A stretch of DNA of 64,000 nucleotides from Geosiphon pyriformis uo1 (Eukaryota; Fungi; Glomeromycota): positions 682,001 to 746,000 of the forward strand of contig JAAOMT010000040.1 in assembly GCA_016748015.1 (NCBI GenBank), written 5' to 3'. The translations under genes were made by a program, and so were the position numbers. The notes beneath the pieces are model-generated. The model was not told the origin of the DNA. It was given only the letters and a program-made list of their open reading frames with translations, and made no database searches. Each line of letters opens with the position of its first letter. The first letter of the stretch is position 1. Positions 5,034-64,000 of this stretch are shown one piece after another.

Positions 5034-6398
5034 ATGCCCTTAAAATCAACACTTTATATTAAAAGGCAATTAGAAAGTCGTATATTTCAGTTCTACTTTA
5101 TCGCTTTTCTTTTTGTATTCAAGTTCACCTTGGTAATAAGACAATGGAGCTTCTCCCAACATTCTGACAATCTTCCAGTAACGGATCTTTCAAGGCTTGC
5201 TCGAGCAGAAAATAATTCCCATGAAAATCCTATGATCCAACAATTAAAAGTTTTAACAGAGCTAAATTTGGAAAGCGAAGAAAAATTTTTAACCGAAAAA
5301 AATATCTCACAACCATTAAATTTCTTAAATTTTAACAAAAGAAATTTTAAAATCTCTCTTTCTAAAGGATTAAATGGTGGGGAAATTAATTTTTTGAAAC
5401 AATTCACAACTTTGACTATGACTTCTTATTGTCTTACTGAAACGCAAGCTATTGGACCAGGAATCTATGGTAGTTTTATTTGAAAATTAGCAGGTGCAAT
5501 TTTCCTTTACTAATTTTGTCGTGACAGAATGGTTTCAAATCTTTTGCAGCGGGCATTTTTTTTGTTGAGAAAACTGTAATTATCGCTGTAAGAGGGGAAC
5601 CATTAGGAAATGAGGAATATTGGGGAAATAGGCAAAATATCTTGGTTCCTTATCCTGGGATCGCTGGGGCAAAAATCGACTATGAGTTTAAGAGTCGTTT
5701 TGAGAGCATAAAACCGAAATTTATAGAGTTTTATGATACTCAACTTAAAAATAAAAATATTGAACATGTTATCGGAGTTGGACATGGTTCGGGTGGTGGT
5801 AAGAAGCTTATGGAATTTTCTAAAATTAAAATGAATTTAAATTTTTTCAATTTAAGTACTAAATCGCATTAATTTTGAAAATTTTAGTTTATGTTTTGCT
5901 TGGAATGCTAGAATTAATAGCGCTCAACGTTAAACAAAATTTAAAAGTGTTTACTTTAGGACAACCTCGTTTTGGCAATCGCCAATTTGCACATTATTTG
6001 AATTCACTCCCCAAGATCAAGATTAGAATTTTTCGGATCACTAATATGGATGATTATGTTCCAAGGCTACCATTGAGTACTTCCAACTCATTTTACACCC
6101 ACACGCTTCTGGAAAATTGGATTGAGGCAGATGATTGCTTGTGTGCTACCGGAAAGGTATTCGCTTGTGCGGGGCCACAATCAGGGCTAGATAATTTTGT
6201 CGAAGAGAGCTCGGTAAATACTTCTTAAGGTTTCCTTAAAATTTAAAGGATTACTTATTTTAATCATCTCATTTTCACCTTTGTTTATAGCAATGTAACA
6301 ACAAATACTCAACCAAGAATTATGTTGCGCATATTGGTCCTTACTTTGGGATGACGATGCAATGTCCTCCTAGACAATTTCCATGGCTGACTATCTAA
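5034..6398 (+). CDS. Lipase class 3 fold protein 1, nucleophile Ser replaced (GHGSGG); exons 5034-5469, 5550-5798, 5888-6213, 6291-6398
   Basis: GT-AG introns join in frame; motifs SYC, VIIAVRG, GHGSGG, FTLGQPRFGN, RITNMDDYVPRLP, YTHTLLENWI, CNNK, AHIGPYFG; N-terminal hydrophobic segment. Confidence 0.9.
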
Positions 6399-8164
6399 GA
6401 TGGAAATATTATAACTCCTAAAAAATTTTAAATGAAATAAAATATAGAATAAATGGTATAAACTTTTCTCTCACTTGTATTCAAATTGCTAATTTCCCTT
6501 ATTAGTTTTCGTATTTACTAAATTAGAATAATCAAATCAAATATATTCACGAAAAGTGTTAAGATATTAATTATCGCTTTATCTACAAATAACGTATCCA
6601 TATTTTATAATATTATGAATAATAATCAAAAATCTAATATTAATCCTAATAAATATGTTCTGTTATTAATCGTGAATATTTCAAATTGGAAACTTTGGCT
6701 CAAGTTTCAAGATTTTAATTAATACATTGAACCTCTAGATTTTATTCATTTAACTTCAAATCATTATCGATGTAATATTATTATGTAATATATTTATAAA
6801 ATCCATGGCGTAAAGAGATTAAAAATTGAAAGTTTTCCGTTAAATTTCTTTGGTGACATTCTATGTACAATTGCATAAAGAAAACTTTTCTGTATCCATA
6901 AAAAACACATGGATACTAAAAAAATATCTGATTGGCCAAATTTTCACGATACATTCAAATAGTAGAAAAATTAACAGAATAACTGTACTACAATTTTTTT
7001 TGTGATTTGAGGTGCTATTACAATATAAATATCAAGAGCTCTAATCTAAAGATTTTTGTTTGCAAAAAAAATTGATTCAAAATTCCAAAACATAAATCGG
7101 TTTTCCTAAATTAATTATGAATATATATATATATATATATGCAAAATTAGAAAATTATCGTATTAATTCAAAAAAAAATTTGAACTCACTTGTTTTTTTT
7201 GTTTTTTTTTAACTTGAAAGCTTGAATAATATGAATTGGAATAAAACATGAAAATACTTAATATAAAAATTTTTGAAAATTAAAAGTTGTTAATTAATTG
7301 AAAATTACAATATTTGATTCATTAATGTAGTAAATATATATTGTTGCAAATAAATTATTTCTAGTTGATCAAATTATCAAAATTCATTAAATATTATTTT
7401 TGGTTTTTTAATTTTGTGAAAAAACTTTAAAAATCAAATAATATATTAAATCAATGCATTTAGAAATTTTTTGTCAATATTAAAGTAATAAATGAGATTA
7501 TTTGAGGGTACATTCAAATTTTCATCTTTTTACCAAATAAAGTATGAAATTTAAACGATTACTTGAAAAAAAAACTTGTTAAGTGTTAAGAAATTTTAAT
7601 TCCATAAATCTTTTTTATTTTCAAATATTTCTTTGAGATAAAATTTCAAAAATATAAAAAAAAATTTTCAAATTTTTTTTTTCCAAATATTTTTTAGATA
7701 TCAAATGCGTGAATTGTAGCCACTTATACAAGTATTTAATCTCAGTTCAAAAAAATTATATTTATTTATTTATTTACAGGATTTGATATTAAAAACAATT
7801 TTCGGTCCTATAAATGACTTTGATCGCAAAAAAGATTAACAGAATTAGTTAGCGTTTTTAATAATTTCAAAGAAATATTTTCACGAAATTTTAAATTCTC
7901 TTTTTTGGAATTTCTTAATATAAAAATAAATTTAGTCTAAATTTTTGATGCATAGCGAATGTTACATAATTATGATTTACGAATAATTTGAATGCAAAAT
8001 AAAATGGAATTTTGAAGGGGTTCAATAAGGGGTTCAATAGTTTGTATATATAGTAAAAGCTCATATCTTTAAAATTTGTCTGAAAAATATATTGTTTGTC
8101 CAAAGTTTCCTTTTAATTCAAAGGCTTAACGATTCATTGAATTAATCCAAGAGGGTTCAAGATT

Positions 8165-9522
8165 TTAAGGGAACAAACAAGACCAACTCATCAACTCATT
8201 GCAGGCCTTCTTTGGATCAACCTTATTCCAAACCACAACCCTCTTTAACTGTGCAAAATTAGCATCAATCACCGGCTGAACCATCGCTCCAGTGACGTTA
8301 ATACAATCCAAAATTTCAATAGAAACTAATTCTCTGCATTTTGCTATCGCAGTCCAAGGTTCACAACCACGAAAATCACAGTGAACAAACTTCAAATGTT
8401 GAATAGTGTGAGATTGGCTATAGACACCGCATAAAATGCTGCTCAGGTAGCCGGCACATTCTTTCAAAGTGAGAGATTCTAGATGATGTTGGGATTCTAT
8501 CACGGTTACGAAATCAGTCATGTGTTTAGGGGACGAGTCACCTTGCCAATTTCGTGCTCGTGGTAAATCAACCAATTCCATCTTTCTCTAAAAATTGTTT
8601 GATTATTGGGAATGAAAAAAGATTCAATGTAATGCAAGTTAATAGAATCAAATTGAATTCTAGTAAAAATTACTCACCACATTTCGAAAATTTGAGGCAA
8701 AAATTCCAAATAATTTGGTGCAACCTCCTAAATTTGCTTCAATTACCAGCTGTTCCACGGGTCTCAACAAGGCATTAAATTCTGCATCTTCCAAAATTTC
8801 AAAATACATTTCGTCAAAGCTGAAACTCATTGGGGCAAATCTAAGCCATGACAAAGTGCCACAATGATTCGAAAATAATTTCAACAAAGCCCTAATCACG
8901 AGTTTCACCTCTTCACTTGGGACATAAGTATAATGACTTTGGGAATAGACTGTCCAAACCGATTCCAACATCACACCATAATCTAAACATTTTAAAAAGG
9001 AAGCGTATATAAAAGTCGGTGAATGTTGTGGTTCGGGTAATATGATTCCTTTTTCCAGTAACAAACGCCTTTGATCACGATCTAACATTGTTAAATAAAG
9101 TCTACAAAGTTGACAGCGATCATAGGCTAGTTCAGTGACCCTGAAGTTATAAAGTCTATGAAGCCTCCATGGATGTTTATATAAAACTTGAACCGCTGAG
9201 TCACACCAAAGTTTATTCACAAGCAGGCAACTAAAAAGGCTTGGATATGCTTCAAGATTAAATAAAATATCGTCTTCAGATGGCTTAGTTAATAAATCGA
9301 AGATTTGAAGTAGAATATCAGGGATTAAGTTCGGTGCTGATTTACGATGAGTTCGTATTAAATGTAATGATCTCTTGAATTTTGAACTGAGTTGGGTTTT
9401 AATAAAATATTTTTTTTTTCAGCTCAAACATTCGAAATTTTCAAAGCTTAGAAAAACAGTAATAATACAACTCACGTTGACGAAATGGCTTGAGCAGCAC
9501 CTTTGATTCTTCTTCGAAACAT
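8165..9522 (-). CDS. F-box / RNI-like LRR protein; exons 9522-9476, 9386-8678, 8587-8165
   Basis: F-box LIPDILLQIF...LFSCLLVNKLWC, then YASFLKCLDY and LRR-like LESLTL / IQHLKF / LVSIEI repeats; both introns GT-AG and in frame. Confidence 0.9.
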
Positions 9523-12231
9523 TTTTCCAAGTACAAAAAAAAGAATGAAAATTAATTAAAACAGCAAAGTGGTAGGTAAAGGAATAAAGGAATAAAGGCA
9601 ATAACAATAATTTTTGAACAGGGTTGCAGGCTTTTAATTAAAATGCAGCAAGCAGATTATGTCCAGATGATATTACGAATATTGGACAAACGTAATTATT
9701 AATTGATTGTGCAAAGTGCTTGCATATATGAGCCCAACGATATTGAGAATGTTAATGTAACTGCTATTTATAAATACTTCATATTTTTGGAAGCAATATT
9801 TGACCTATTCTAAAGTTAACTGTGGCTGAATATTGAATTTGAAAGATTTGTCACCTAAACAAATGGTTTTTATGTCACCATGTTTCATAAACATTAATTC
9901 TTTCAGCAGAAATTGGAACAATAATTGTTAAGCTTATTTTTATTACTGTCACAAATCGAAATAAACTGATAAAAAACAAGGACAAGAATAAATATTTTAA
10001 TTTTGGATAAACTAAAAATTCTGTTATTAGAAAAAAGTTTATAAATATATAGTTATTGATAAATTAAAATATAATATAAAAATTATGTTTAAACATTTAA
10101 TGTAATAAATAAAAATCACATTGATTGTAATTAATTATATTTATATGATTCAAAATTGTAATCATATAATTAAAATGTCATTTTTAACATAAATAGAAAG
10201 ATATAATAATAATGTAATTTGAAGAATATATATTAAAAATATAATATAAATTAAATAATAATAATAATATAATTGCTAAAATAATAGTAATTTTAAATCA
10301 ATATTGGTTTTTCAATGAACTTATTTTATTTAAATAAAATTTAGTTAAATTTTTATGATTGCATTATTATTGTTATGTTTAAAAAAATTTATTAATTATA
10401 TTTTTAACCTGATTATTATTCTGATTATTGACTTGATTATTTATTTGATTATTATTCAATTTTTTGGTTTTTTTAATTACTTAATATTTATTTTAAATTA
10501 TTTATATGAATTTTTTTATCAGTCTGTAATAATAACATTAAAATTTTAATTCAAAAGCATCAATTTATTTTATACTTTATATTTTTGAAATATTAATATT
10601 ATTAAATCTTAATATTACTGTAATATATATAAATTAAATGTTAATATTTTGGTTTTCAACTATTTTTTTTGGTAGTTAACATTATTAAACCTTAAAATAT
10701 TATTCAAGCACTTTTAAAAAGACAAGATTATATTATTATTTTAAAATTTCAAAACAAAATTTTAAGTTTTTATTTTTAAATTTACAAATATTACGAAATA
10801 TGTATAAGCTTTAGTTTTTTTGATAAAAAATAAATTTTAAGATAAATATTATATTCATAGAAATAACAAAATTTGAATTTATTAATATTTTATTTTTCTA
10901 TTATAAATATCTTAAAATCTACTTAAAAAATTATTGGTATTAATTTTAATGTTCTAAGATATTAAAGTATGTATTATAATTAATAGCATCTGCATTTTCA
11001 AAATTAAATTATAGAGTTTCGTTATCTTTGATATATCTAGATTGTCTAAAATATTGAAAAGTAACTATTTAACAGTACTTTTTATTCTTTCACAAAATGC
11101 AGCTGTTATAAGTTAATTGGGTTGTTATTTTAAATTAAAATACATATTTAATTAATAAATGATTTGTTTTTGTAATTATTTTTTTAAAAATAAAAGCTTT
11201 TAAAGAGCTTGTACATAACTTCATTATTACAATTAATATAAAAGCGTTATTATAAAATTAAGAAGAAAGCTATTATTTGTTATAATTATATATTTTTAAA
11301 ATTTTGATTATATATTAAAACAATTATATTTAAAATTGCACAATTTATTGTTATTTACCAAACTTTAATTTTTTTTTATTGTAAGAAATTAATTTAAATT
11401 AAAAATTGGCTTAGCAGTTAAAAAACAATAAACATTTACTTTAAATATATTTTGAGTTTTTTTTGTTAATAAAATTGTTAAATTGTATTATTTTTTTAAT
11501 TGTAATTATTAATTTTATTATTTATAAATTTTATTATTGTTTAAATTAGTAGTTGGATCACACCGTTTAAGAAATAAATTTTTTTTACAATAAAAATATT
11601 GTTAAAAAATTAAACTTAATTGTTTTTACAAAATTTATACTTTTATTTATTTTTTATATTTTTATCAAAAAAAATTAATAATATTTTAAAGTTATAAATT
11701 TTTTAAATAAAAGAACTTTTTAAAAATTATTTATTGATATATATAATTATTGATTTTATTGATTTTTGAATTTTTGAGTTTTTTTATTGCCATTTTGTAG
11801 ATTTTTAAAAAAAAATTGGTCGTAATATTTTTTTATCAATATATAATTAAAGTATTAAATAAAATAAAAATTAATAACTTTTCAAAATTTAAAATTTATT
11901 ATAAAATTATATTCATTTACATCATTTTATTTTTTATTATTATATTGTAATTAAAATAATATATGAAAATTATTTTATATTATTACAATAGATTTTCTAA
12001 ATTATTTCGAATTTTGAATTTAAAAAATAATATTGGTACCATATTTAGTGTTTTTAGTATTAGTTTGTTTTAAAACATAAGATTGGCTAGTACTCTGAAA
12101 AAAATTCCCAAATGTGACAATAAGATAATCAGCATGTTTATTTTAATACTATCTAATTTGAATTAGTCACATCGGTGCCCTGATTTTATTAAAAACTTGG
12201 ATGTTTGTTTCAGTTTTCTTGGTCTTTCGAG

Positions 12232-15200
12232 ATGTCAATTTATCCTCTGTATAAAGAAATTTTTCCACCCACGGTCGTCGAAGAGGTAGCTTATGCCAAT
12301 TTTACAGGGCCAAATGATATCAATCTCATAGTTGGAAGAACATCTATACTGCAAATCTACAAGTTCTTCGAAGAAGTTGATCTAGCTTCGGAGTTGGCTG
12401 CTATTGATGAGAACCCCGTAGTTAGTGAGTTGGGCCACAAGGATGAAGATCAGGTAGGCGAGGACCAAAGCCCACCGTGACGTTTGCTCATTCAACTATA
12501 GTTTTATACCCACCAACACCTAAGGAAGGACTCTATTTATTAGACTTTGGGATTTCAGAGAACATACATTCTTTCTTTTCACTTAACCTTTTAATTAAAA
12601 CTCCTCCTTAGCGCTTTAATAGTTCCCAATATCTTTATTGAATTCCTTTAGAATAACTGATCATTAAATAATTTTCTGATCTTGCTATTGAGATTGAGCA
12701 TTTCTAGTTACAAAAGGCTTTTGGAATTATATCTTACTTAGGAATAAGATAAATAGAAGGATAAAATCCATGTAATTTTTTTTTAAAATAAAAGTTTATA
12801 CAATAAATCCTGCGTTATTGCATCTAAAACGTCCAATAATCGATTTAAATGATTTTTATTTGCTCCACATTTATTTTGCAATAGTTCCCGTTCACATAAT
12901 GATCCATTTTTTTACTCGCCTAATCTTTGCATCTTTCACTAGGACTTTATCTTTCCCGCTTTGAAACCTGCGAATTCCTCACTTACGATGACTGCCCACT
13001 TGGAACTTGTGGCACAGTACAAACTTCACGGAAATATAGCTTCTATTGGGGTTATCCGAACAATTTCCTCAGGAGCAAATGGGATGGATAGTTTACTATT
13101 GAGCTTTAAAGATGCGAAGGTATTTTTTCCGATGATCATTTGTCTTTGATTATCATTGAAATCGATTTCGTTAAACGATCTGGTCACTTTTTTTATTCTT
13201 TTTCCAGTTATCTTTATTAGAATTTTCATTAGCTACCAATAACGTAATTACAGTATCAATACATTACTATGAACGCGAAGAATTTAAGGTAATAAAAGCC
13301 AAATGCTTTCTCTTTCTGCTAAATCCTTTAGAATCGGGCATTTATTATTTTTGAAATTCAAAAGCGAGAATTTCTTTCTAATCCGTGTACAACCGAGCTG
13401 CGTGTGGATCCATCCAATCGTTGCGCGGTGATGAATTTCTACTGCGATCGTTTAGCTATACTTCCATTTCGTCAAGAGGAATCCATGCATATGGATGAAG
13501 AGGAAATTGCCAGGTCAGAGCAGATATCCATTTCACAGTCAAGATTTGAACCCTACAATTCTTTTAACATATAAATTTAAGATACTAACCACCACATAGC
13601 AAGCTTGAAGAATATTTTCTCACAGGTTTCGTTTTTATATAGAAAATGGCCGTATTCACCTAGTTTTGTCGTCAAATTGACTTCGATACATAGAAAACTT
13701 AAAAATGTGATTGACATGAAATTCTTGGATGATTATTATGAACCAACATTGGCTATCCTTTTTGAGCCGTTACAAACTTGGCCAGGGTGAGTTGTTGAAT
13801 TTTTTTCTTCAGGACCTTCAGGAATTTACGCTTTACTTCAAACCTAGGAAACTGTCGTCGAAGAAAGATTCATGCTCTCTAGTTGTAGTATCACTCGATT
13901 TATCGCAAAAATTATATCCAATCATTTACGCCATTGAAGAATTACCTCACTCCAGCGTAAAACTCATTCCCATTCCTAAACCAGTTGGTGGGATTCTGGT
14001 GGTATCCGCCAATTCTCTAATTCACGTGGATCAAAGTGCATCAATAATCGCCCATGCCGTAAACGGCTACGCGGTATCAGCGACTGATATTCCTCTTGAT
14101 CAATCACAAGAACGATTGGGTCTCAGTCTGGAAGGCTCTCAACACCTTGTACTTGATTCCCATCATGTTCTACTTTTCTTGGCCAATGGCAAACTCTACC
14201 TGGTTGAATTTATTATAGACGGACGATATGTGTCAAGGATGGATGTCCGTGAGACTGGCGAAAGTACTCTCGCATCATGCGTTTGCCGGATCAATGATGA
14301 ATATGTATTTGTTGGGTCAAGGCTAGGAGATTCCCATTTAATCAAATATAAATTAAACCAAAACGAAAACGAGGTAATAAGGTCATCCCAAAATCGAGTG
14401 TTTTACTAATGGAAACAGCATAACCAAATGAATATCGACATTATTAGGTCAATAAAAACACAATTGATGAGCCAGGTGAGCAAAGCAAAGCTGGAAAAAC
14501 TTGTAATTCAGTTGTCTAATAAGAATTCTATTAAAAACCTTCAAAATATTAGATCTCTATGGAAGTGGCTCAAAAGTTGCTGCCAACAACACACTGAATG
14601 AGACGATTGATGGAAATGAAACATCTTCAAATGAAATTGATTTCAAGATTTGTGACACTTTGACTAATGTGGGACCAATAATTGATATGGCTTACGGTGA
14701 GCCAGCTTATCCCGAGGTATAATCCAATTTCTGACAGTATTTGTTGCGACATATAGTCTAATGTCATAAGAATTTTTAAATTTTATTAATTAAAGGGAGT
14801 TGATCATACTTTACATAAGGATCTGGAGTTAGTCACATGTTCCGGATACGGCAAATCAGGCTCTCTTTATGTATTTCATGTAAGCGTTAAATATGGCAAT
14901 TTAAAATTATCAGTTCATTGTTCCTTTCTTCTAATTTTGATTCTTAATAATAGCGTAACGTTGATCCGCGCTTAATCAGCTCTTTTGCTTTGGAAGATTG
15001 TCAGAATATGTGGACTGTACGTTGCCGTAAAGAATATATGTATGAAGGAATAAAAATTGACAACGGGCGCGATTTAAATGACGATGAAACATTTGACAAC
15101 TACCTTTTTATATCTCTAAACAATAGGACCATGGTAAATTATGGATTTGTGAAAATTTAAATTGGGAATAGAGTTTTAATTCTATTAGGTTTTAGCTATT

Positions 15201-23478: not shown

Positions 23479-24184
23479 ATGTTGATAATTGATACAAAAG
23501 TTTTAAACTTTTTACTCAAACTAGGACAATGAGTATATTCGTTTCAGGAGTAAAAGATTGATTCTTTTATTTTTTTATTATAACAAATTCAAAAATTTCC
23601 ATACAAAACCCGAATCTTATTTTATTCTCATTAAAGAGCTAACTGTTATATTATAGAATTACATTTGTTTTTATTCATTTGATGGCCGAAAACAATGTTC
23701 ATGAATTAAATGTGGCTATATTTTGATAAAAAATGAGAAGTATCTTCAACGAAAGTTACAGTTGTCGCGAAAAGCAATAACTGTTAAAGTTCTTCCGCAA
23801 TACGAATTATGATGGATTCATTTCCTGATTACTTTGAGATGTAGTATGATTTTCGATTATGGGGTAAAACTATAACCAATTCATTGATCATAACATTCAA
23901 GGATGATTGTTCAAGAGGAGATGCGCAACAAAGTATTTCAATGTACTCCCTCTCTCTCATATGCCATCTTTAATATTTACATATTAAACGTTCACAGCCT
24001 CTATATTTTAGGCAATGTATCAATTTTGTTCTTGAAAATCTTTACTAAAAAGCTCATTTATATCCAAATAATTATATTTGAGAAACGTGAAAATGCCGAA
24101 AAAGGAGGATATCTGCTATTGTTCGTCATTTTAAAAATTTTCTCCTTAAACTTTTACCATTTCAATTAAATAAATTACATGTCT

Positions 24185-24870
24185 TAATTTGAGTTTTATG
24201 AATGGGACATGCTGTTGGTTTTGGTAGTTAAGAACAGTATTAGGATCTTTTTCTTTATCAATCAAAGAAAAGTTATTGCCTCTAATAATAGGTTTAAGGC
24301 CAAGTTGGTCAATCTTCTTTTTGATTGCACAGTTTTAAAATCAATAAATTGGTCTTTCAGTTTCATGGTTGTATTTGTTTTATTTTCTATTTTTTTAATT
24401 CTGCTCAATACTACAATTATTACTTTTGGATCTCAAAAGAATGTGAATGCTACAATTGTTAAAACTAGTATTTTAAAAAGATATATTTAGTAAAAAACTT
24501 TTGGATGTTAGATTATTTGATTTTAGATTACAAAATGTCTTTTTCTTTTTTTTCAAAAACTTTGTTTAAATATGTAGTCGGTTTTAAGATTTTTAAGTTT
24601 TATATTAAAGTTTTTGCTTTTTTGGCTTTTTAAATTTGAGCTGGCTAAGTTGGCTTTATTAATTAAATTTATTATTAAGTCTATTAATGTTTTGGTTTTT
24701 ATGATAATAAAGTTAATTGATATATTTTTTGCTTTATATACAAAGTTAAAAAAAATCTGTTTTGTTTTTAAAAAAATTATTAATAAGTTAAGTAAAAAAA
24801 TTATTAAATTTAAGATAAATTATATAATTAAAAATAATAATATTATTAAAAATATATTTGTTTAGATAAT
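24185..24870 (+). mobile_element. Degenerate non-LTR retrotransposon ORF1 fragment (divergent relative of the 41.7 kb element)
   Basis: VLVVKNSIRI...ASNNRFKAKLVNL...ITFGSQ resembles the younger ORF1 segment FLIGKDSVHM...ASKNWFRVLLFTL...VVGFES; decays into AT-rich sequence. Confidence 0.5.
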
Positions 24871-26671
24871 AGCTTTTTAAAAGCATTAAACATTTAATAT
24901 TAAATTAAATACAAATAAAATTAATAAATAATTAAGTAATATAATTATATATAATAATATATTAGTTGTTTTTATACATAAAATGTTTTTTAGAGTAAGT
25001 TTTTTATTAAATTTAATATAGTTTAATATAAACTAAATTTTTATTTAATTATATATAAAAAATATATAAATTATATTAATTTTAAACTATTTAAACATTA
25101 TATTATAATAAATTATTATTATTTTTTTTAATAGTTTTATGAATAAAATCCAAATACTATCTAGTATATACATTAAACAAAGTAATTTAAACTAAGCATA
25201 AATTATGTATTTATTACATGTAATTAGTATTATCCAATTAGAAAAACTAATTCAAAACTGTTGAAAAAATGTAATAACTACATAAGAATATAAAATAACA
25301 TAGAATAATACAAAATAACATGTAATAATGCAAATTAATATAAAAAAACATACAATAATATACAATAACATAAAATAGTACAGAGTAACTAATAATAACA
25401 TAGAATAACTAATTATAATATAAAAAACAAACACAATAACTGAAATAGTAAGTAATAGTTAATAATAACAAACAATTGAAAACAATTTTATAAAACTAAA
25501 AAATATGTATTAAAATAAGTAATTTTAGAAATAAAATAACAGACTATATAAAAATTAAAATAATATTTTTATTTTATTTTTAGTCTTAAAAATCTTTTTT
25601 TATTATTTATTATTTTTTTATTTTTTTTTATTTCTTTTGCAAAATGGCAATATTAAAAATTAACTGTTTTAGAATTAAATTTTATAATAATTTGGTAAAA
25701 AAAAAGCTTTTTTTAGATTTAGATATTAACTTTATCTTGTTAACTTATTAAAAAAACAAAAAAATAATATTAATAGTAATTATACTTAATTAGTTTAGAA
25801 AAAAACACAAATATAATAACATAATTAAAAAAACAATATTTTTGTGTCTTATAACAAAAATACTTAACAAGTAAAATTTTAAACAAAAAAACTTTCAAAG
25901 ATTGATAATTTATTTTATTAACAAAACCAATTTATTTGAAATTATTTTGTTTTTAATATTAATTTATAAACATCAAATATTATAATTATATCTTATTAAA
26001 TTTATTTGTAATAGCCACTTAAGCCAATTAAAACAATATTAATACTACTGTTAATATTAAAAATAAATAAACATAAAATATATATGTCAAAACTTATACT
26101 TAAAGCTTTAGCAATACTAAATAATTTAATTATACTCTTTGACTATATACTTAGAAAACTGTCAAAAAAAGAAGACATCAAACTATCTAATAGAATTAAA
26201 TCTTTTTTTTCTATAATCACATAATACTTAAAACATATGAACCAAATTCTATTTTTGTAAGCCAAAACCAAAACCAAACCACAAACAAAGTTTATAATCT
26301 TATTAACAGTAATATTAAAATTTTTAAAAACAAAAAAAAAATTTACAAATCAAGTTTTAAAAACAAAATTCTTGTATAAAGCAATATAAACTATAGAATT
26401 TTATAAATATAATAACAATAATTAAAACATACAAAATAAAAAATTAACACAGACCAAAAAAATTTTACATGGTAGTCTAAGAAACCAACAAAATATTATA
26501 AACAACAGAATTCAATTTTATAATCTTTGAAAATTTAATATATTGAAAAGCTTACAAAATTGAAATTTTAACAATTTTCAGACCAAATTTTTTCAATAAT
26601 TTTGGTTTACTATCTAGAAATTACAAACAATATTTAAACTTTAATAAAGCTTAGTTTTAAAAAAAAAATTA

Positions 26672-26872
26672 TGTTATTAGCAAAAATTTGAGATATTATT
26701 TAACATAAAATTATTTTTATAATTTTTATTATTAATTAACATATATTATTATTTCAATTTATTATTTATTATCTTATTAAATTATCTGAATTATTATTTA
26801 ATTAATAATTTGATTTATATAAAACACAAATATAATTAAATTATAATAATTAGATTATATAATATATAGAAT
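26672..26872 (+). repeat. About 200-bp direct repeat, copy 1 (LTR-like, begins TGTTA)
   Basis: Aligns by eye along its length with 32159-32361; preceded by an A-run that may be a decayed polypurine tract. Confidence 0.7.
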
Positions 26873-26875
26873 TAT

Positions 26876-32158: not shown

Positions 32159-32361
32159 TGTTACCAGTAAAATTTTAGTCAATAATTAATATAAAATTAC
32201 TTTTATAATTTTTATTAATAATTAGCATATATTATTATTGTTTTATTTATTACTTATTATTTAATCAAATTATTACAATATTTTTATCTAATTAATAATT
32301 CAATTTGTATAATGCACTAATATAACCAAATATAATAATCAGATTATGCAATATTTCGAAC
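32159..32361 (+). repeat. About 200-bp direct repeat, copy 2 (LTR-like; possible 5' LTR of the gypsy-like relic)
   Basis: tgttaccagtaaaattttag...ataataatcagattatgcaatat matches 26672-26872. Confidence 0.7.
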
Positions 32362-35300: not shown

Positions 35301-35544
35301 AACAAAATATTAACAAAACAGCTCAAACAATTATTGTTATAATCAATAATATAAAAAAAATTCCAGTTGGAAAAAATTGATAATTTTCTATTCACAATTA
35401 GTGAAATTATAATTTCAGTCAAAATTTTAGTTATAAATGTATTCTAATATTAAGTTTTTGTTAGAAATAATTGGCTTCTTAAAGCCAATACAAATTTAAA
35501 TTAAAAAACTCAAGAATTCAAGATTTTATACTAAAAACAATATA

Positions 35545-39526: not shown

Positions 39527-39868
39527 TATCTGACTTTATTATAATTAATAAAAAATCTATTAATTATATAAGTTTTTTTATTAGTCTTTTTTAACAAATC
39601 TTTAAGATTATATATTATGTATTTATAAACAAAATAAACAACATAATCTTATACAGATTTTTTGTGTTTAAGTCAATCTATTTAAATTTGTTTTAATAAT
39701 ATGTACAGAATACTTGCCAATTAAAAATATTTTTTTAAAAGCCAACAAATTAGTCTGAATTAATTTGGTAAATTTTATTATAATCTTTTATTACAGACTT
39801 ATTAATTATAACTTGATTAATATTACTGTTTTAAACTTAAATAAAATTAAAACAATATTTTTTAGAAT

Positions 39869-41053: not shown

Positions 41054-41855
41054 AACCAAAATAAAATCAAGTATTACAATTAATATAATTATAACAAAGA
41101 TAATATAAATAATAAAAAATTAGATTAAAGTTAATATCTTGTTTTTTATAAAAAAAATAAACTTTAAATTAAAAACATTATTTTAAAAAACAAAAAAAAA
41201 TACTTTAAAAAGATTGCTTATTTACATTTTGGTTATTTAAATAATAATAAAAAATGAATTTTATTATTAACTTTTTATTAAAAATTTTAAAATTTTTTAT
41301 AATAATAACAATTATATTATAACTAATTTTATTTAATTGCTTAAAAAGAAACTTTTATTAAAACTAAAAAAAAGAGTTAAAGATTGCTTAATATTTATAC
41401 TAAAAAAATATTTTAAAGAAATACTAATTAGCAGATTTTATTTATAAAAAAGCTTTTTAAATATTAAAGTTGGTAAAAATAATAAAATAAAAAAAATTTT
41501 TTTCATTTTTTATTTTAGTAACAAAAAGAAATTATAAGTTGCATAATATCAATAAAATTATTTATGTAATTTATTTTAGATTAATGTATTGTTTTTAAAC
41601 CAGAGACAAGATTCCAAAAAGATTTCTTACCATATTTTGATTAATAATCTTAAATAAATAACAGATTTATTATTTTTAAGTACAATTTTACCAAAAAAAA
41701 CACAAAAAACTTTCTCTCTTACCTCCACAAACCCTCAAAAAGTGCTTTTCTGATAAAAAAGTTTTTTTTATTTTTATTTCTCTTATTAGTATTTCACAAT
41801 TTCTCTTTCTAATAACCCATTTTTCGTGGATCTGGAGGCTGCCTTTAGTAGCAAC

Positions 41856-43710
41856 ATGTCTAAAAAAAAGGCACCAAAGGGTGCTTTTCATGGTCTTGCT
41901 GGTGGTTCCTTCTCACAGAAGAAGAAAGTTGTGCTTGAGAATGTCAAACACTCAGGTAATAAAAAGGATATTTCTCTAAACAGATCTGAGCTTGGTAACA
42001 ATGTGTACTCTGATGTGGATAGTGTGTCTGGTGATGAAAAAAGTACTAATATGACCAGCATTAATGTTGGGTTTCTTCTGGATTCTGCCGCCAATACTCT
42101 TAAAGCCAAGCGTGTCAATACTGGTGCTGTTTTTGGTTTACCTCTTGGTTCTCCTAATTTTGTCATGAATGATGATGAGGATGTCTCTTTTCCTTCTCAT
42201 CTTTCAATCTCTCTGAAAAAGAAATGGATTGACCCTAAAATTGTTAAGACCCAGGTTGAGGTGTTGGTTAAGAAATCATTTGCTTTGGACATTAATCTTT
42301 CAGCTGTAGAAGAGAAATCGGCTACATTAAAAACTCAGTTCATCAGAAAATTGTTTTCAAAAATCAATGATTTTGGGGGGGCCACTACCTTCTCAAAATT
42401 TGAAGGGATCATCCGATCAACGTTTACTTCTGAAGAAAGCTGTATCATTGGCTGAACAAGAAGAGATCGTCGTAAACAATGATGTGAGGAAACAAGGAAT
42501 TCATTCAGATTAAACCATAGTAATAAAAGAAATTCCCATGGATACACCAAAGGGAATGATTGTTGCAGCTCTTTCTGAGTTTGGTCAAGTGGTGTCGATT
42601 TAATTGCAACTCATTGGGCTGTGACAGAAGGCTGTAGTGGAGTTTGCTGAATCAAGTCAAGCAGATCTACTGGCAGCTAGGTGGTCATTCTTGATCGGAA
42701 AAGATTCAGTGCACATGGCCAAAGCTGTGGGAGATTGTGAGACATAGGCATCAAAGAATTGGTTCAGAGTGCTTTTGTTTACTTTGCCTGTGAGTACAAC
42801 TGCGCATGATCTTGGAAATCTTTTGGAAGGGGCTGGTGGGAAGATGTGTATCATTAATTGGTCATTGAAAAGTGGCAATAGGACTTGCTGTGCTGTGGTT
42901 GGCTTTGAGTCTGATAAAATATTGGAGTCGGCTTTTCACACGGTTCCAATTCTTGGTAGAGTAAAGCTTTCTTGGGCTAGATTGGGTCTTGTTCAGTGTG
43001 ATAGGTGTGGGAAGCTTGGTTATTCAGTTTTGGAGTGTGATGTTGAAATTGCTTCCACTCCCAAGCCTCCAAAATCATTTATAAAGTGGGTCACTTTGGA
43101 TGAGAATTGCCTCCAACTTGCCAAGTTGTATGTAAAAAAGAGTGTTCCCATTTTTTGCCCAGCTGCCTTTGGTGGTAAATCATGAGCTCAAGTTATTTCT
43201 TCTGCATCTATGTCTTCTGGTTTTTCTGTTGGTTTTGAATTGAGTCTCTCTTCTTCTGGTGGTTTGCTTTTTTCTACTTTTTCACTTAACTCTGCTTTAA
43301 ATGAACACTTGTCGTCTTTGGAATGATCTTTGGGGCTCCTGTCAGACCAAGTATCATGTATACTAAAATGCCTAGATGGTATCAGGTTGGTGCCTTTGGT
43401 GCCTGTTTCAGATGATACTCCAGCTGTGTCTGTCTCTTAACTTTTTGCTTCAGTACTGTTTGTGGTTGCAAATTCAAATTCTCTTTCTAATATGGTCTTG
43501 GATAGTCCAGATAGTCTTTCTAATACCCTCCTTCCTATTGCTACTGATAGTCCAGCTCTTGGCTCAAGCAGTTCTAAGGTCTTAACTTCCAAGTTGGACA
43601 GTCTTAAATCTAAATTTGTGGCTCTGGAAGTTTTGGTAAATTCTATTTTGGTGAAGTTTGATCAGTTGTTTGCTGGCTCAGGATCGTCATTGTTCTTCAA
43701 GTCTCAATGA
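41856..43710 (+). pseudogene. LINE ORF1 (nucleic-acid-binding, zinc knuckle)
   Basis: ATG at 41856 (MSKKKAPKG); CDRCGKLGYSVLEC is a CCHC knuckle with H>Y; several stops and at least one frameshift. Confidence 0.85.
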
Positions 43711-46700
43711 ACAGTTTGGTTTGAAAAGTTGCAATGTGTAATATTAGGGGAATGAACAATCCTGCAAAATAGGATGATATTATTTGTTGGCATAAAGAAA
43801 TGAACAATGTGATTTCAATTATTACTGAAACTAAGTTAAAAGATAAAGTCCATCCTTGGATCATGGACAAGTTTGATGGCATTCGGGTTTTTATTTCTGG
43901 TTTGGAATCTGGTCATCTGGGTTCCAGGTTTGTAATTATTATAAGCAATTTTTTGGCTCAGCATGTATGCAAGGTTTTGGATATTCTTGGCCGGCTTCTT
44001 TCTCTTAGGCTCCTTTTCAAAAATAATCTTTCTGTGTCAGTTTTGGGGCTGTATACTGGAGCTTCTCTGGTAGTTTGTTTCTTTCAGGCAGATAATGTTA
44101 ATTCTCTGATTGCAAAGGCAGTGAATGAGTCCTCTTTTGTCATTCTGAGTGGCGATTTCAATGAAGATAGTTCTCACAAAAGTGCAAGTTTCAAAAAATG
44201 TTTTGATTTAAGTTTGGTTAACTTCTTAGGTGGGAGCTCATATGGAAAAGAAGCTACGTGGAACAATTTTCGGGGAGTTGCCAAAACTATTGACTGTGTG
44301 TTTGTGTCGTCGAATCTTGTTAATGTGATTTTAGATCATAATGTGGCTGGCATTGAGGAGTTTTTTGATACTAATCATAGCACTGTTTTTGTTTCTGTGG
44401 GTCTTGGTGGTTTGCTGGATGTGCAATTAAACTTATTATGTAAACAAGCCAACAGAGATCATTGAAAGTTTGATGTTAATAATGCTAATAGGGTGAAATG
44501 ATGCAAATTTAAAGATGCAACAGCTGCTAATGCTGCTATGCTTTCAGATGACTTTGCTGTGGCTAAGAAATTCTCAGATATGGATTCAATGTAAGACATT
44601 GTTCGCAAAATTTTGGTTCTGTTGGCTGTTGGGACATTCAAAAAGAAGTGGTTTAAGGGTTTTGATTGTGTTTTTACCAAGATGTCTTCTAAGTTCTATA
44701 AGCTGAAGCTTCTGGTTTCCAAGCTGGTAAAGGCTTCTTGTGAGTCATCTAGTGACAATTTTGAGCGATTATTGGAAGCATGAATCAAAATTGACCCTGA
44801 TAGTGCTACAGTAACTTATTCTTTTTTTCTCTCAGATTTTAATTTTGATGCTGTCTGTTCTTTATTGGCTAAGGCTAGAAAATTTTACTGTTCCTCTAAG
44901 CTGCTGAAGTCCAGGCATGCTGAGGAATCTCAAATTAAACAAGCTATTGATAGAAGAATGGAGGGTTTTGAATTAGATAAAGGTCATACTATCAGGAGTG
45001 TTTTGGAGCGACCCTTTCGAAAAGTGGTTTTGGATCATCTGGTGGTTGACGAAGAGTTGATCTTGGAGCCTGAATTGGTTAAATCTAAGGTGGATGAAAT
45101 TATGGAGAGTTGGACTAGGAAGCATGCAGTGGTCTTTGACATCTCTAATAATTGGGCTTAACAATATTTGCCTTTAAGTTATGTTTTTGACAAAGCCTTT
45201 TCTGATGTGATGGGTTTGATTGATTTTGATGAAATGTCTACTGTCATTTCGAATTTGCCTAATAGAAAAGCGGCTGGTCTTTTTGGCATCTCAAATAAGT
45301 TGTAGAAACATTGTGATAAATCGGTTTTGGATATGCTTTTGGTGCTCTTAAATTTCTGTTTGGCTCATGAATCAGTGCTTGGGCCTTGGAAGAAAGCATA
45401 GGTCTCTATGATTCCCAAACCTTATGAATGGAAGGGCATTCTTACGAATACTTGTCCTATTGCTTTGATTGAAACAGCTTGCAAAGTTCTCTCCAAGATT
45501 CTTTCCGATAAGATCCCTCTAGCTTGCAGCAATTTTGACATTCTTTGTGGTGACAATTTCTCAGTTTTAAGAGGTACTTCAACTCATTCCCCTATTTTCA
45601 CTGTGGGTTTGGTAGTTGAGAATGCTTTGGAAAAGAACCAAGAGCTTTGGTTGGTTTTGCAGAACATGTGAAAAGCATATGATTCTGTTGGATGGGAGCA
45701 CCTTGAGAAAAGTTTAGTTAGAATCAAGATGTGTAGCAAGTTTATTTGTTTCTTTGGAAGTATTTATAGAGGTTGCACAAATCAGGTTATGACTGATTTT
45801 GGGCTAACTGATGAGTATCAGGTGCATGATAGTTTGGATCAAGGAGAGATCTTCTCTCTCCTCCTTTGGCACATATTTTACGATTCTCTTCTATGTGAAG
45901 TCAAATGACAGGAAAGTATGTGCGAATACAGATTAAACTTTTATTTCATCTTTAAGACTGGTCATGCTGAATCTAGGGCTGGACATTCTTTCTTTTTCGC
46001 TGTCGGTGCCTTTGTGGATGATACAATCTGAATTGGCAGCAGTCAGGTTGCCACTTAGCATATTCTTAATATGGCCAGTGAGTTTTTTCAGATAAATGAT
46101 ATATCTATTAATATTGATAAGACAGTTGCCATTCCAATCAATTGCCGAATCAATGCTCTATCTCTTTTCATTAGTGGTTCTCCAATCTCTATTGCTAAAA
46201 AAGGCAAATCTCATCATTATCTGGGTATTTTTCTGTCTACTAAAGGTCTTTCTAAACCAAGTTTGGCCAAAGCTCACACAGATGTTAGATTTTTTACCAA
46301 TCTTGTGCTGAAAAAGACCATTTCAGATAAACAGTTTTTTTATTTGGTTTCCTCAGTTCTTTATTCTATTGTTTGTTACAGAACTCAGTTCAGTTTTGTT
46401 CTCTTAAGTGTGTGTAACAAGTGGGATACTTTGATTTGTAAGGGTTTGAAATCGACATCTGGCCTGCCTCTTGACTTCTCCAATAATGCGTTTCATCATC
46501 CTTACTTGTATAGTTTTAAAACTTTTGAACAAATTCAGGCTAAAAGCAAGCTAGCTTCGATTGTAAGCTTTGCGAATTCTGTTGGTATTTTGGGTCGTCT
46601 ATTCTCTCACAGGGCACATGATTTACAAGTTCTCAGTTGGCATCCACTACATTCTTTGTGTTTTTTTATTCATGTTAAAATACCCTTTTTAAACAATTTC

Positions 46701-48392
46701 CTGGCTGGCATAGTTCGTGTTTTCCTCGATTATAATTTGTTTTTTAGCAATTCTATGGCCAGTGCTTTTCGTTTCTGGAATAGGACCCTCTTGTTAAGTG
46801 TTTTTGGTGAATCATGTTTCGTCAGTTGTCAGTTGTCACTATAACACTATGATATTGTTTTTGTGGAACAGCTTTTTTGTCATAATGGCTCAATTTTTGA
46901 TTGGCATACCTTCAAATGGTGAAAGAGATTAGACCTCTGTGGTTCCATTCCTTGCTGGTTTGATTTCACTGTTGATTTTCTTAGGCACTTGGCTTTGTTT
47001 TCTTCATCCTCTTATGTTGTGGACAATCTTGGACTTTTGAATATTTTGAAATCTAGTCAGTTTGACATGGTTTGCAATAATCTGCTTAGTGTGGAAGCTA
47101 ATAGTCTCTCTGTATACACAGATGGTTTTGTGGCTGGTCTGGGGACTACTGGCATGAAAGCTGGAGCTGCAGTCTTTTTTGAGAATGTTGGTATGGGTCT
47201 GGGAATTGAAGTTTCTGGTTTGGTTTCTTCAACTCTGGTGGAATTGCAAGCCATTGCCTTGGCTCTTGAGTGTGTTTTCCCTTCTAGTTCAGTCAATTTA
47301 TTTTCTGATAGTTAAGCTGCCTTGAATGCATGCAAACCGGAATTGGTTTTGGTACATTCAGATTTTCGTAATTGTTACTGAATTGAGCATTGTTACATAA
47401 AGAACATTATTCAGACTAAAAACTTGAATGTTGTCTGGTGTAAAGTGAAAGGTCATTCTGGTGTTTTAGACAATGATGTCACAGATATGCTTACAATTCA
47501 GCTTCTTCTTCTGAATGTTTTCTTTTTCTTTGTCTTAAAGAACATTTTATCTTGGCTGATGGCTGTGTCGTTTCCAGTAATACTAGGCATTTTGCTCGTG
47601 ATATCTTTCGGTCTATTCATCATGCGCATTGGGAAGTTAGTTCTGGTTTAAGGGTTGTTGTAGATAATTTGTTGGCTGATATAGATTGGTACAGGTCTTC
47701 TCTTGTGTGGCATCCCAACTTACACATGGCTGCTGGTTTTACAAGCAAATACACTGCTAGTGCTCACTCATATTTTATGAAGGCTCTATATTATTAGTTG
47801 TCAGTTGCTGTTTGTAAACATCTTTATGACAAGTGTTACCCTAGTGTAGTGTGTCTTTTTTGTGGTAATGTTAAGATTTCTGATCATGTGTTTATATGCA
47901 TTTCTGATATGGCTGTTCATGCTCATTTATTGGATTCTCATGCAGCTATCTGAAAGTCTCTCTCTGGTCTTATGTGGTCTTTTTTATGTCTTATGCAGTT
48001 AATGTCGCCTGGTGCTTCCAATGGGGTGGTGTTTACTGCTCTCTGTAAAGGTGTTGTTTTCAATGATTGGTTCCTAGAAGCTGTTTCCATTTTTGGTGAT
48101 TCTAAGATTGCAGGCCATTTGGTGATCGATTTTGTGTAGAACTTTTGTCTAGCTTTTAGAGAAAGTTTGGTTGGTCTGTGCTAAGCATCGCATTCTTATA
48201 AAGAAAAATAGATTGATTCCGAAGAATGGTTCTATGTCTGTTTTTGTGTCTGGGTTTTCTACTACTTTTTCTGCTAGTGTGGTTAAGTTATTAAGTATAT
48301 CTGAAGCTTTTGGTATTAGTTCTGGGTTGTGTAAAACTTGTTTGTTTTTTTCTGGCATAGGGAATCTAGTTTCTGTTCATATAGACATTTAG
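43707..48392 (+). pseudogene. LINE ORF2 polyprotein: AP endonuclease, reverse transcriptase, RNase H, C-terminal CCHC
   Basis: CNIRGMN, ITETKL, GDFN, IDCVFVS (endonuclease); NTCPIALIE, KAYDSV, LDQGE, AFVDDT, YLGI (RT); VYTDG, ELQAI, FSDS, KVKGHSG (RNase H); CLFCGNVKISDHVFIC. Confidence 0.93.
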
Positions 48393-57745: not shown

Positions 57746-59390
57746 TTAGTCCTCCTTTTCTTCTAAAGCAGGACAAATCATCATGTAACTGAAATAAGGC
57801 CCAAAATGTGTTAATTCAGCTTCCCCTCTAACATTTGTAATTAATGAACTACATTCCTAAAAAACAATGAGAATGCGTGATTAATAGTTGAATCAAGAAA
57901 AACTTGAATCAGGGAATTTGATTTAATTGATACCTCTGACTCATCCCGATACCCATTTTCCTTGTCACCAATCCATTGACCGTGGCACTCAAATACGTCC
58001 ATGGTGTAGCAATCACATGAAGGAGATATCCAATATTCAGTTTCATGATGCAAATAGCCCGTTTCACCTGTCCTTGCTGGGAATTGTGGCACATAGTCAT
58101 CGTGATTTGTTATTCTATATATGACAAGTGATTGTTTCTTTAAATATTTGGCAAAGGTTCGGTCACCCATACGTGGAGCCCCGTATGTATAAACTGATAT
58201 ATTTTCCTTGGATAACTTTTCATATTCTTTAAGTTTAAGCGCCGCAAGTACCGCCCAAACTAATGAAATTATTAAGAAATCTCAAATTTAGAATGTGATT
58301 TTAAAAACCAACATGAAAAAATTAACTCACCTCCAGCCGATCCATGCCCTACAACACTTATTTTGTTTGATTGCTTGACAAAAGCCCTCATTTTATCATA
58401 AATCTTTATCCAAACATTGATAAAATCAATATAGAACTTTGCATCAACCTTGCCAAACTCTTCATTATTATTGAGATAGGCATAGGAATTTTCTCTTTGA
58501 GACCATTCCCATTTCGTCATAAACTTTGCTTGAAAATAAAGGATCATTTCTGATTGAATTGTAGTTACTTGTGCTAGAATTTTTTTTAAAATATAATGAA
58601 TAGTGCAAAAAGTATATACCGAAATACAGAATTTATTCTAGACTTTACCATATACAGGACCTCCATAAATTCCATCGGTCAATTTGTCCTCAGGTAAATG
58701 TAGACAGTAAGCTTTTTGAGCAAAATATGCGTATCGTTTAAAAGCTTCTAGTAATTTGTTATTTGTTACCATCAATGAATAACCAGAAGATAGTAATGGT
58801 TTTGATGATTTTCTGCTTTCACTCAAAATCTGAGGCATTTTATGAGTAAATTTTTGGCTTATTTTTCTTTTTAAATTTATGCTAGGGTTGTCACTTGAGT
58901 TTATCCAATTAATTTTTGAACGAGTCCCTTGTCTGTAACTATATGTGAATTTGATAGGAACTTGAAAATGATGACTTGATGGATTTTTTCGAGTATTTTT
59001 TAGATTTTGGCTGCATTTTAAGGGTACTACTTTGAGCAAGTTAGTCTTTTTTGGATTAATGAAGATGGTAGAATTTAAAAAATTGCATAGAGAACTCAAG
59101 TTTTCATTATTAAGAATAGCTTTTCCCAAAAAATTTTTAAAATTTCTAAGAGTCAAGGGAAAAGTAGTTGTATTAATTTGTTCGTGGCTAGCTGTGTGAA
59201 AATTTTCTTTTTGATCTTTCCCGTTATCACGTCGGAATAAATGTTGTTGAACACCGAGAGGAATTTGTTTTGCCATCATATGTGCTACAATTACTGCCAT
59301 CCACGAGATTAATAAAAATTTCTTGAGATGATTAATCGAAAAATGAAGCCTTGATTTCCTGAAAGAAATTCTAAAAGAATATTGACACAT
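57746..59390 (-). CDS. Lipase class 3 fold protein 2 (GHGSAG); exons 59390-58649, 58573-58331, 58259-57934, 57856-57746
   Basis: YAYFAQKAYC, VVGHGSAGVWAVLAAL, YTYGAPRMGD, RITNHDDYVPQFP, YLHHETEYWI, THFGPYFS; intron positions and phases match gene 1; start codon uncertain. Confidence 0.9.
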
Positions 59391-62677: not shown

Positions 62678-63932
62678 TCATAATTTCTTATAATCTTTAA
62701 ATATAACGCTTTTTGGGGAAGTAGCCTTTTCGACGTTTGCCATTGTATCATCCGGACAGAGACTCATATCATACCCAAAATAAGGACCATTATGAGGATT
62801 AGAAATGTAGCCGTTTGAAATTTGTGCACCACCATTGCATTCCTTTTAAAACAAAATTTTTTAAGAATTCATATATTAACTAATTAAATGGCAAAAAAAT
62901 GAATAAAATATAAATTTTTGATACCGTATTTTCAAAATTCGTTTCTGTGCTGGAACATCGATAAACCTCGAAAGTCTGATTTTGACAATCACAATTTTGC
63001 TCGCGAGTGATCCAATATTCTGTTCCAAGATGTTTGAATAATTTTTGACCATTCTCATCTGACAAAGGAAAATGTGGAACATAATCATTTGCATTGGTAA
63101 CCCGAAAAATTGGATATATTTTCTCATTTGCATGTTTTGCAAAATTTAGATCCCCAATCCTAGGCTGTCCAAATGTGTATACTTGAATGTCATTATCTGG
63201 AAATCTTCTTCTTAATGTCAAAGCTAAAAGAACGGCATGTGCTAAAAAATAATAAAAAGTATAGAAATTGGGTAAAAATTTAATTAAATGAAAACGATTG
63301 GATAGGAATAAATTTTTTTAATCATAATATTTATGTGATCATTTACCTCCACCTAAACCATGACCCACTAATCGATATTTATAATTTTTTGTCTCCTTTG
63401 TATGTCCTTCAAGCTGATTTAAAATTTTAGTTGCACCTTCAGTTGATTCTAGTAACAAATGACGAGAAATCATTCCTGACTCAAAAAAAGGGTAATGAAC
63501 AAGGGGTGGTCGTTTTTTGCTCCATTGACGCTGATTTTGTCGTTCAGCATTAGATCTAAGAGAGATTATAATTTCTCCATGATCATTGCTTGTATAAATT
63601 TTGGCTGAGTAAGTTATCAAGAATAGAGAAAAGAAGAAATTGTTTTAAAAAAATGCCAGTGAATATATTTTGAAAACAAAAAATTATTTAAAAATTTCAA
63701 AAAAGTGAAGCTTACCGAATATTTTTTTTTGAATTAAATCCTCTTCATCGACGAGACAGTAAGCTTTATTAGCATAATATGCATATTTTTTTAAGTTGTT
63801 CAAGATTTTTTCATCGATAACACGTTCTTTTGAAGCGTTAGAAGATCGTTTTTCATCCACTTTTCGTTTTTCAATCCTTGGAGATTTTATTATTGGAAAA
63901 TTTTGGGAATTATGATAATCAAGAAATTTGAA

Positions 63933-63968
<36 letters not shown>

Positions 63969-64000
63969 GGCGCTGGATTTTTTGATTTCTCGTGACAATT
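62678..64000 (-). CDS. Lipase class 3 fold protein 3 (GHGLGG), 5' end beyond the window; exons >64000-63716, 63604-63347, 63241-62925, 62842-62678
   Basis: YAYYANKAYC, LVGHGLGGAHAVLLAL, YTFGQPRIGD, RVTNANDYVPHFP, FKHLGTEYWI, PHNGPYFG; poly-Asn from (AAT)n at 63933-63968. Confidence 0.9.

Follow-up and report, generated by a model that had tools for sequence, protein, structure and literature searches.

The nucleophile of a class 3 lipase is the serine of its G-H-S-x-G elbow. Can genes of this fold be maintained and multiplied without it, and what would their products then do? This question is raised by a stretch of 64 kb from the genome of the fungus Geosiphon pyriformis (contig JAAOMT010000040.1, positions 682,001 to 746,000; referred to below as the window, with positions counted from its first nucleotide), which carries three lipase-fold genes with glycine in place of the nucleophile serine. 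The best explanation of these genes (genes 1, 2 and 3) is that they belong to a G. pyriformis-specific expansion, roughly 300 genes in size, of homologues of fungal class 3 (Rhizomucor-type) lipases. The following features of the three genes were identified.

5034..6398, + strand: gene 1, a four-exon class 3 lipase-fold gene without the nucleophile Ser, open spliced frame of 372 amino acids (aa)
5034-5469, 5550-5798, 5888-6213 and 6291-6398, + strand: exons of gene 1, separated by GT..AG introns of 80, 89 and 77 nucleotides (nt)
5780..5797, + strand: nucleophile elbow of gene 1, GHGSGG, with the Gly codon GGT at the expected Ser position
6052..6063, + strand: acid motif of gene 1, DYVP, with the catalytic Asp position kept
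6330..6347, + strand: His motif of gene 1, HIGPYF, at the catalytic His position
57746..59390, - strand: gene 2, a four-exon lipase-fold gene without the nucleophile Ser, longest open reading frame (ORF) of 473 aa
59390-58649, 58573-58331, 58259-57934 and 57856-57746, - strand: exons of gene 2
58332..58349, - strand: nucleophile elbow of gene 2, GHGSAG, with the Gly codon GGA
58087..58098, - strand: acid motif of gene 2, DYVP
57791..57808, - strand: His motif of gene 2, HFGPYF
62678..64000, - strand: gene 3, a lipase-fold gene without the nucleophile Ser, cut by the window end and in frame from 63998
..63716, 63604-63347, 63241-62925 and 62842-62678, - strand: exons of gene 3
63348..63365, - strand: nucleophile elbow of gene 3, GHGLGG, with the Gly codon GGT
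63075..63086, - strand: acid motif of gene 3, DYVP
62777..62794, - strand: His motif of gene 3, HNGPYF

Gene models and sequence motifs

The models of genes 1-3 were rebuilt from the raw sequence, and Pfam and homology searches were made exon by exon. No stop codon was found in the exons, all introns are of the GT..AG type with phases 1, 1 and 0, and the exon borders of the three genes share columns of the family profile (~44, 126/127 and 236/237). Exons 2-4 of gene 1 were matched by this profile. The frame of gene 3 continues past the window end to its first ATG, at window-equivalent position 64250 in locus L012. The Lipase_3 family (PF01764; cut-off, 22 bits) was recognized in exon 3 of all three genes (42-54 bits), with 42.4 bits (E = 8e-11) for gene 1 and 53.6 bits for gene 3; exon 2 alone scored below the threshold in all three genes.

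Gene 2 corresponds to a public protein model of Geosiphon pyriformis, KAG9306406.1 (P0001; hypothetical protein, 289 aa), which in a full HMMER scan was a 100% identical match to exon 3 and in which Lipase_3 (74.8 bits) was the sole Pfam family found. The public model starts at an internal ATG (58838-58836). With an open frame as far back as 59390 and transcript contigs up to 59026, the gene 2 protein is probably longer than this model, up to 473 aa, and has an N-terminal hydrophobic segment. Such segments are present in all three genes, with Kyte-Doolittle 19-residue maxima of 1.6-2.4 from residues 17-28, and end by residue ~46; a low-complexity linker follows. This architecture fits secretory or type II membrane proteins with disulfides, as predicted from sequence.

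None of the three genes encodes the nucleophile Ser of the G-H-S-x-G elbow. The catalytic Asp (x-D-x-V-P) and the C-terminal His are present in all of them, as are the [AS]YC and C-x-C motifs and two or three further Cys; six conserved Cys are kept. The oxyanion loops of genes 1, 2 and 3 read AVRGE, YFQAK and SLRSN, respectively; F-R-G-S/T was not found in any of them. Pairwise identity among the three proteins is only 32-35%. On all of these points the rebuilt models agree with the initial annotation, which had described three intact, very divergent paralogues with the same intron positions and no stops, the elbows at exactly these coordinates, the same oxyanion loops, and the conserved Asp, His and Cys motifs.

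Intactness, selection and transcription

Exons 2-4 were open and in the expected order in 67 of the 78 distinct copies that were stitched, exon by exon, from 50 loci plus the window. The chance of a 372-codon frame staying open at the base composition of the window is ~3e-15. For gene 1 and its nearest sampled paralogue, a copy more distant than the closest paralogue representative (P0067), the ratio of non-synonymous to synonymous substitution rates (dN/dS) was 0.39 (Nei-Gojobori; bootstrap interval 0.24-0.59; synonymous divergence 0.79). Four other pairs without the nucleophile Ser gave values of 0.21-0.52 with all bootstrap intervals below 1; three of these are GH-G pairs, and both members of the fourth, from C572, lack the elbow His as well (GVG, GDG). 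The values for canonical GHS pairs were 0.11-0.26. Selection on these copies without Ser is purifying, but looser than on the canonical enzymes.

The one public sequencing run that contains this DNA (X1) is typed as 'RNA? (probably DNA)'; its contigs were compared with genes 2 and 3. They are confined to exons and skip stretches of 77, 82 and 105 nt with CT..AC ends, which correspond to intron 3 of gene 2, intron 3 of gene 3 and intron 2 of gene 3. In gene 2, they cover exons 1, 3 and 4, up to position 59026, and skip the intron at ~57856-57933. In gene 3, positions 63242-63346 and ~62842-62924 are skipped exactly. One contig spans 63347-63415, including the elbow, and is joined to 63241 with 0 differences and with the GGT Gly codon intact. 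Because the contigs are exon-only and GT..AG introns are precisely removed, X1 is most simply read as RNA-derived. On this simple reading, both genes are transcribed, splicing agrees with the models, and no editing alters the Gly codon of gene 3.

These data bear on the reading of the family as decaying pseudogenes, or as dead weight spread by duplication. A key catalytic residue is lost, many copies lie in tandem arrays, and dN/dS values of 0.3-0.5 exceed those of the canonical paralogues, as such a reading would have it. However, the frames have stayed open at 32-35% identity, most copies are intact in exons 2-4, every bootstrap interval of dN/dS lies below 1, the Cys, the Asp and the fold core are invariant, and spliced transcripts exist. 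The pseudogene reading is already largely refuted and we regard it as very improbable. The initial annotation had named dN/dS near 1 without expression as the mark of recent pseudogenes; neither was found, with dN/dS at 0.2-0.5 and spliced contigs for genes 2 and 3.

Predicted structure and relation to known lipases

The public gene 2 protein (P0001) was the one chosen for folding. Its AlphaFold2 model, based on a 98-sequence alignment, has a mean predicted local distance difference test score (pLDDT) of 90.2 and a predicted template modelling score (pTM) of 0.89. In Foldseek comparisons with 6QPP, 6A0W and 3TGL, the probability was 1.0 and template modelling (TM) scores were 0.63-0.75. The matches were the Rhizomucor miehei, Rhizopus and Thermomyces lipases and feruloyl esterase A; the lipase-like domains of EDS1/PAD4 were placed lower. 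From this confident model, the gene 2 protein is predicted to keep the lipase fold, and the comparison with R. miehei lipase that the initial annotation had proposed gives a match at TM ~0.7. The family profile matched the same PDB lipase chains with E ~1e-42. In the profile-to-PDB alignment, GHG falls on GHS, D-Y-V-P on D-I-V-P and H-x-GPYF on H-L-x-YF, the last being the H-L-x-Y-F of 6A0W, and the elbow is aligned without an indel.

The alignment at the elbow also speaks to the proposal that the nucleophile has shifted by one residue, so that genes 1 and 2, with Ser at the +1 position (GHG-S-GG and GHG-S-AG), would encode active lipases. GHGSGG is common to the subclade of gene 1. Yet only 11 of 151 copies without the nucleophile Ser have Ser at +1; the others have Val, Ile or Leu, and gene 3 has Leu. 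In the Sm-X-Nu-X-Sm-Sm geometry of nucleophile elbows, the +1 side chain points away from the pocket, and the alignment to solved lipases without an indel predicts the same packing here. We therefore consider a shifted nucleophile improbable.

With the lipases of Rhizomucor miehei, Rhizopus and Thermomyces lanuginosus (PDB 3TGL/4TGL, 6A0W, 1TIB/1DT3), the family shares the fold, the position of the G-H-x-x-G-G elbow, the Asp strand and the His loop, as well as the N-to-C disulfide (A-Y-C ... C-terminal Cys) and the lid segment after the F-R-G strand. It differs from them in the replacement of Ser by Gly, the loss of the Ser/Thr after F-R-G, an extra Cys forming CxC and a Tyr that follows the elbow. 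Further differences are the long hydrophobic segment at the N-terminus, with its low-complexity linker, and the number of paralogues, ~300 very divergent ones instead of a few. Feruloyl esterase A of Aspergillus niger (PDB 1USW/1UWC; profile E ~1e-37) has the same class 3 lipase fold; this active Ser-His-Asp enzyme shows that the fold can take non-lipid esters.

The canonical class 3 lipases of Geosiphon and arbuscular mycorrhizal fungi form the closest outgroup in the tree. Examples are Geosiphon genes at C710:460 kb, C729:810 kb and C787:877 kb and the Entrophospora and Ambispora proteins P0120 and P0045. They have the same post-elbow intron and H-x-GPYF motif as the family, but retain GHSLGG and FRG-T/S, lack CxC and show the lower dN/dS values given above.

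Two groups of proteins illustrate non-catalytic use of related folds. In plant EDS1, PAD4 and SAG101, the class 3 lipase fold is used without hydrolysis, as proposed here for the Geosiphon family, and SAG101 also lacks the triad. The family profile matched their domains with E values of 1e-12 to 5e-5. These plant proteins are cytosolic, have a C-terminal EP domain and form heterodimers that bind nucleotide signals. The Geosiphon proteins, in contrast, have a single domain, are rich in Cys, carry a hydrophobic segment at the N-terminus and are much closer to the secreted lipases of fungi; an EP domain is absent from the proteins of genes 1-3, which end 14-32 residues past the His motif. In neuroligins, a non-catalytic alpha/beta-hydrolase fold serves for binding, and Gly stands in place of the nucleophile Ser. 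They belong to the cholinesterase-like branch, occur in animals as small families and bind protein ligands.

Size and distribution of the family

When the 128-Mb assembly was scanned with Pfam in six frames, 783 first-look candidates were obtained, with 171 matches among the 150 that were scored. A strict DNA pattern, defined as the elbow codons followed by a phase-1 donor, was found genome-wide in 147 GH-G, 27 GH-S (AGY) and 5 GH-S (TCN) elbows; all reversed-pattern controls gave 0. The relaxed pattern detected 335 GH-G elbows (control, 15) versus 49 GH-S (AGY) elbows (control, 1). These counts and the intact genes support the view, put forward in the initial annotation, that a lipase-fold family was retained and amplified without the nucleophile Ser.

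The residue at the nucleophile position in the 150 best database representatives is G (84), S (28), A (8), R (7), D (5), N (2), Y (2), F (1) or C (1). When sources were looked up, 19 of 20 non-Ser representatives came from Geosiphon and one was metagenomic (P0133), and the non-Geosiphon relatives had GHS in all nine cases: Coemansia, Massospora, Ambispora, Neoconidiobolus, Entrophospora, Jimgerdemannia, Paraphysoderma, an amoeba and a fly. Word-indexed protein searches with P0001 and with the 98-sequence alignment returned 2 and 18 proteins, respectively, and are uninformative on distribution, the paralogues being too divergent. A protein atlas search gave generic Lipase_3 clusters only.

The metagenomic protein P0133 (797 aa), which is not known to come from Geosiphon, has two Lipase_3 stretches; the domain recognized by the family profile lies at residues 181-476 and has the elbow GHGTGG. 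Its contigs, from Logan and JGI, are ~2.5 kb long.

Besides Gly, the nucleophile position may be taken by Arg (a GHR subclade), Asp (GHD), Cys (GHC), Ala (GHA), Asn, Phe or Tyr. Family-wide, such variant elbows are carried by P0016, P0050, P0062 and P0130, by P0037, P0070 and P0123, and by loci L003 and L011. In a small group on C572, the His of G-H is gone too (GDG, GEG, GVG). Four GHSIGG elbows (G000:C25:5336, C228:4454, C604:14039 and C640:211431) share a near-identical 24-mer with the Ser codon TCA, two changes away from any Gly codon. These four copies may represent a young Ser-bearing subfamily.

The family-profile scan of the 64-kb window found no Lipase_3 genes other than genes 1-3. 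Two further members are located 11-13 kb past the window end: L027 (G000:C708:755410-758592), in which the elbow GHGLGG is followed by GGCAAG, a possible GC donor, and a copy at G000:C708:759154-759327. Genes 2 and 3 therefore belong to a loose cluster with four or more members.

Phylogeny and order of losses

The trees, for which the elbow columns were removed, do not include the five TCN-type GHS copies or many of the arrays. All three window genes fall into a Geosiphon-only clade with a support of 98 in FastTree (170 rows) and 99 in IQ-TREE with the posterior mean site frequency (PMSF) model (63 rows). The Ser is missing from about 80-88% of the copies that the clade contains. Three canonical Geosiphon GHSLGG genes are placed outside it, together with Entrophospora.

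The initial annotation had taken the Ser-to-Gly change to be ancestral. This part of it does not stand. Copies with Ser are interleaved with those without it inside the clade, at least 8-17 state changes are needed, and the approximately unbiased (AU) test rejects monophyly of the Ser-less copies (difference in log-likelihood 129.8, p = 0.00017), so that a single ancestral Ser-to-Gly event is rejected. The nucleophile Ser was either lost many times, or lost early and then regained.

Three other positions separate the clade from its relatives. The Ser/Thr after F-R-G, in the oxyanion loop, occurs in 12 of 13 canonical or outgroup sequences, in 1/16 in-clade copies with Ser and in 9/136 in-clade copies without it. 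The first Cys of CxC is absent from the canonical and outgroup sequences (0/8) and present in all 14 in-clade copies with Ser and in 138 of the 139 without it. For the Tyr after the elbow, the corresponding fractions are 0/14, 17/20 and 104/149. Judged from these alignments, the change common to the clade is the loss of the oxyanion Ser/Thr with the gain of CxC, not the loss of the nucleophile.

In sampled copies, the Ser codon was AGY in 20 of 20 cases, and the Gly codons were GGA (21), GGT (19), GGC (3) and GGG (1). The spread of Gly codons argues for old losses. AGY and GGY are one transition apart, which could be held to favour an assembly or sequencing error at the Gly codon, or its recoding or editing back to Ser. 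We give this almost no credence: glycine is encoded at ~320 independent loci, all four of its codons are used, the spliced contig of gene 3 carries GGT without a difference, and the public gene 2 protein reads the same.

Possible function

We consider it somewhat probable, from sequence, that these lipase-fold proteins of the secretory pathway bind ligands without catalysis; the lipid-binding, decoy or sensing role suggested in the initial annotation is plausible. The function of an acyl-enzyme hydrolase would have ended at the base of the expansion, with the oxyanion Ser/Thr lost and CxC and the post-elbow Tyr gained. After that, the nucleophile side chain would have been free to go; it would have become dispensable and been replaced again and again. 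Gly may dominate as the best fit to the strained turn of the elbow, to judge from the known geometry of the fold. The products would enter the secretory pathway via the N-terminal hydrophobic anchor, followed by the low-complexity linker, and the retained pocket under a variable lid may hold a lipid or some other acyl ligand that is left uncleaved. The result would be a diversified family for binding, recognition or sequestering, perhaps where the fungus meets its Nostoc symbiont, or in the scavenging of lipids. G. pyriformis is probably a fatty-acid auxotroph.

The main rival holds that the proteins are still enzymes. Water or a hydroxyl group of the substrate would be activated directly by the His-Asp pair that they keep, for transacylation, lyase-type chemistry or hydrolysis that needs no Ser, and the Gly would leave space at the elbow. 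This rival owes its standing to the conservation of the His and the Asp. In 151 domains without Ser, the Asp is kept in 148 (98%), the His in 115 of 134 (86%) and five Cys in 94-100%, compared with a mean top-residue frequency of 0.40, that is, 40% for an average column. The most conserved blocks are the core strands, the elbow, helix C after the elbow and the GxPRxGN strand; the lid and surface helices vary most. The minor variants GHD and GHC carry a potential alternative nucleophile. On the other hand, the oxyanion Ser/Thr is gone as well, the His is replaced by Asn or Tyr in ~14% of the Ser-less copies, and the nucleophile position tolerates Arg, Phe and Tyr. When Ser is mutated to Gly or Ala, the activity of serine hydrolases usually falls by 4-6 orders of magnitude; in the lipase fold, the Asp and the GPYF motif serve structural roles as well. 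His-Asp chemistry is thus a serious possibility to which we assign a distinctly lower likelihood than to ligand binding without catalysis.

Several observations weigh against the ligand-binding interpretation. The conservation of Asp and His far above background fits surviving His-Asp chemistry too, and the Ser-bearing copies nested in the clade may have enzyme activity. Variability of the lid does not exceed that of other surface helices and so gives no specific sign of ligand diversification. The anchor or signal was called from hydropathy only, in an AT-rich genome, and the hydrophobic segment was found in only 14 of 36 long public models; truncation and fusion are frequent in public models. 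The confinement to Geosiphon was judged from a database sample, and P0133 also has a GHG domain.

Other features of the window

The following features were recorded outside the lipase-fold genes.

2836-3594, + strand: ORF encoding a Jacalin-like lectin domain (PF01419, E = 1.2e-8), located 1.4 kb upstream of gene 1
10001-12000 and 24001-42000: stretches of extremely high A+T content (12-22% G+C)
13729-14409, + strand: ORF matching the first beta-propeller of RSE1/DDB1/CPSF1 (PF10433, E = 1e-17), probably one exon of a larger gene
26 to 36 kb: strongly negative GC skew (-0.17 to -0.32)
41826-46844, + strand: G+C-richer block (37-39%) with three long ORFs (209-257 aa) without a Pfam match

Window-wide scans revealed no large tandem array and no Rfam match in the AT-rich stretches, and nothing relevant to the lipase-fold genes among Rfam families and tandem repeats.

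Implications

Non-catalytic descendants of lipases are known, as in EDS1, PAD4 and SAG101, but hundreds of maintained, transcribed homologues without the nucleophile Ser in one fungus are not described in the literature searched. No description of this particular family was found in the searchable literature, which did not include the Geosiphon genome paper. To our knowledge, Geosiphon is the only fungus with an intracellular cyanobacterium (Nostoc). It is related to arbuscular mycorrhizal fungi, which depend on lipids from their partners. Lipid-dependent relatives and a cyanobacterial symbiosis make a huge, fast-diverging family of lipase-shaped proteins a candidate handler of lipids or of symbiont surfaces.

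A bolder proposal, which we put forward only tentatively and regard as unlikely, is that the ~300 proteins are a diversified receptor-like family of the cell surface or lumen, which would have evolved with the Geosiphon-Nostoc endosymbiosis to recognize, sequester or traffic lipids derived from the cyanobacterium or the host, or else that they perform a new, Ser-independent His-Asp chemistry. Either way, repeated switching of the nucleophile, off and on, would have accompanied the expansion. Interleaved Ser and Gly copies on a background already without the oxyanion residue offer a natural series in which to follow how an enzyme fold turns into a binding module.

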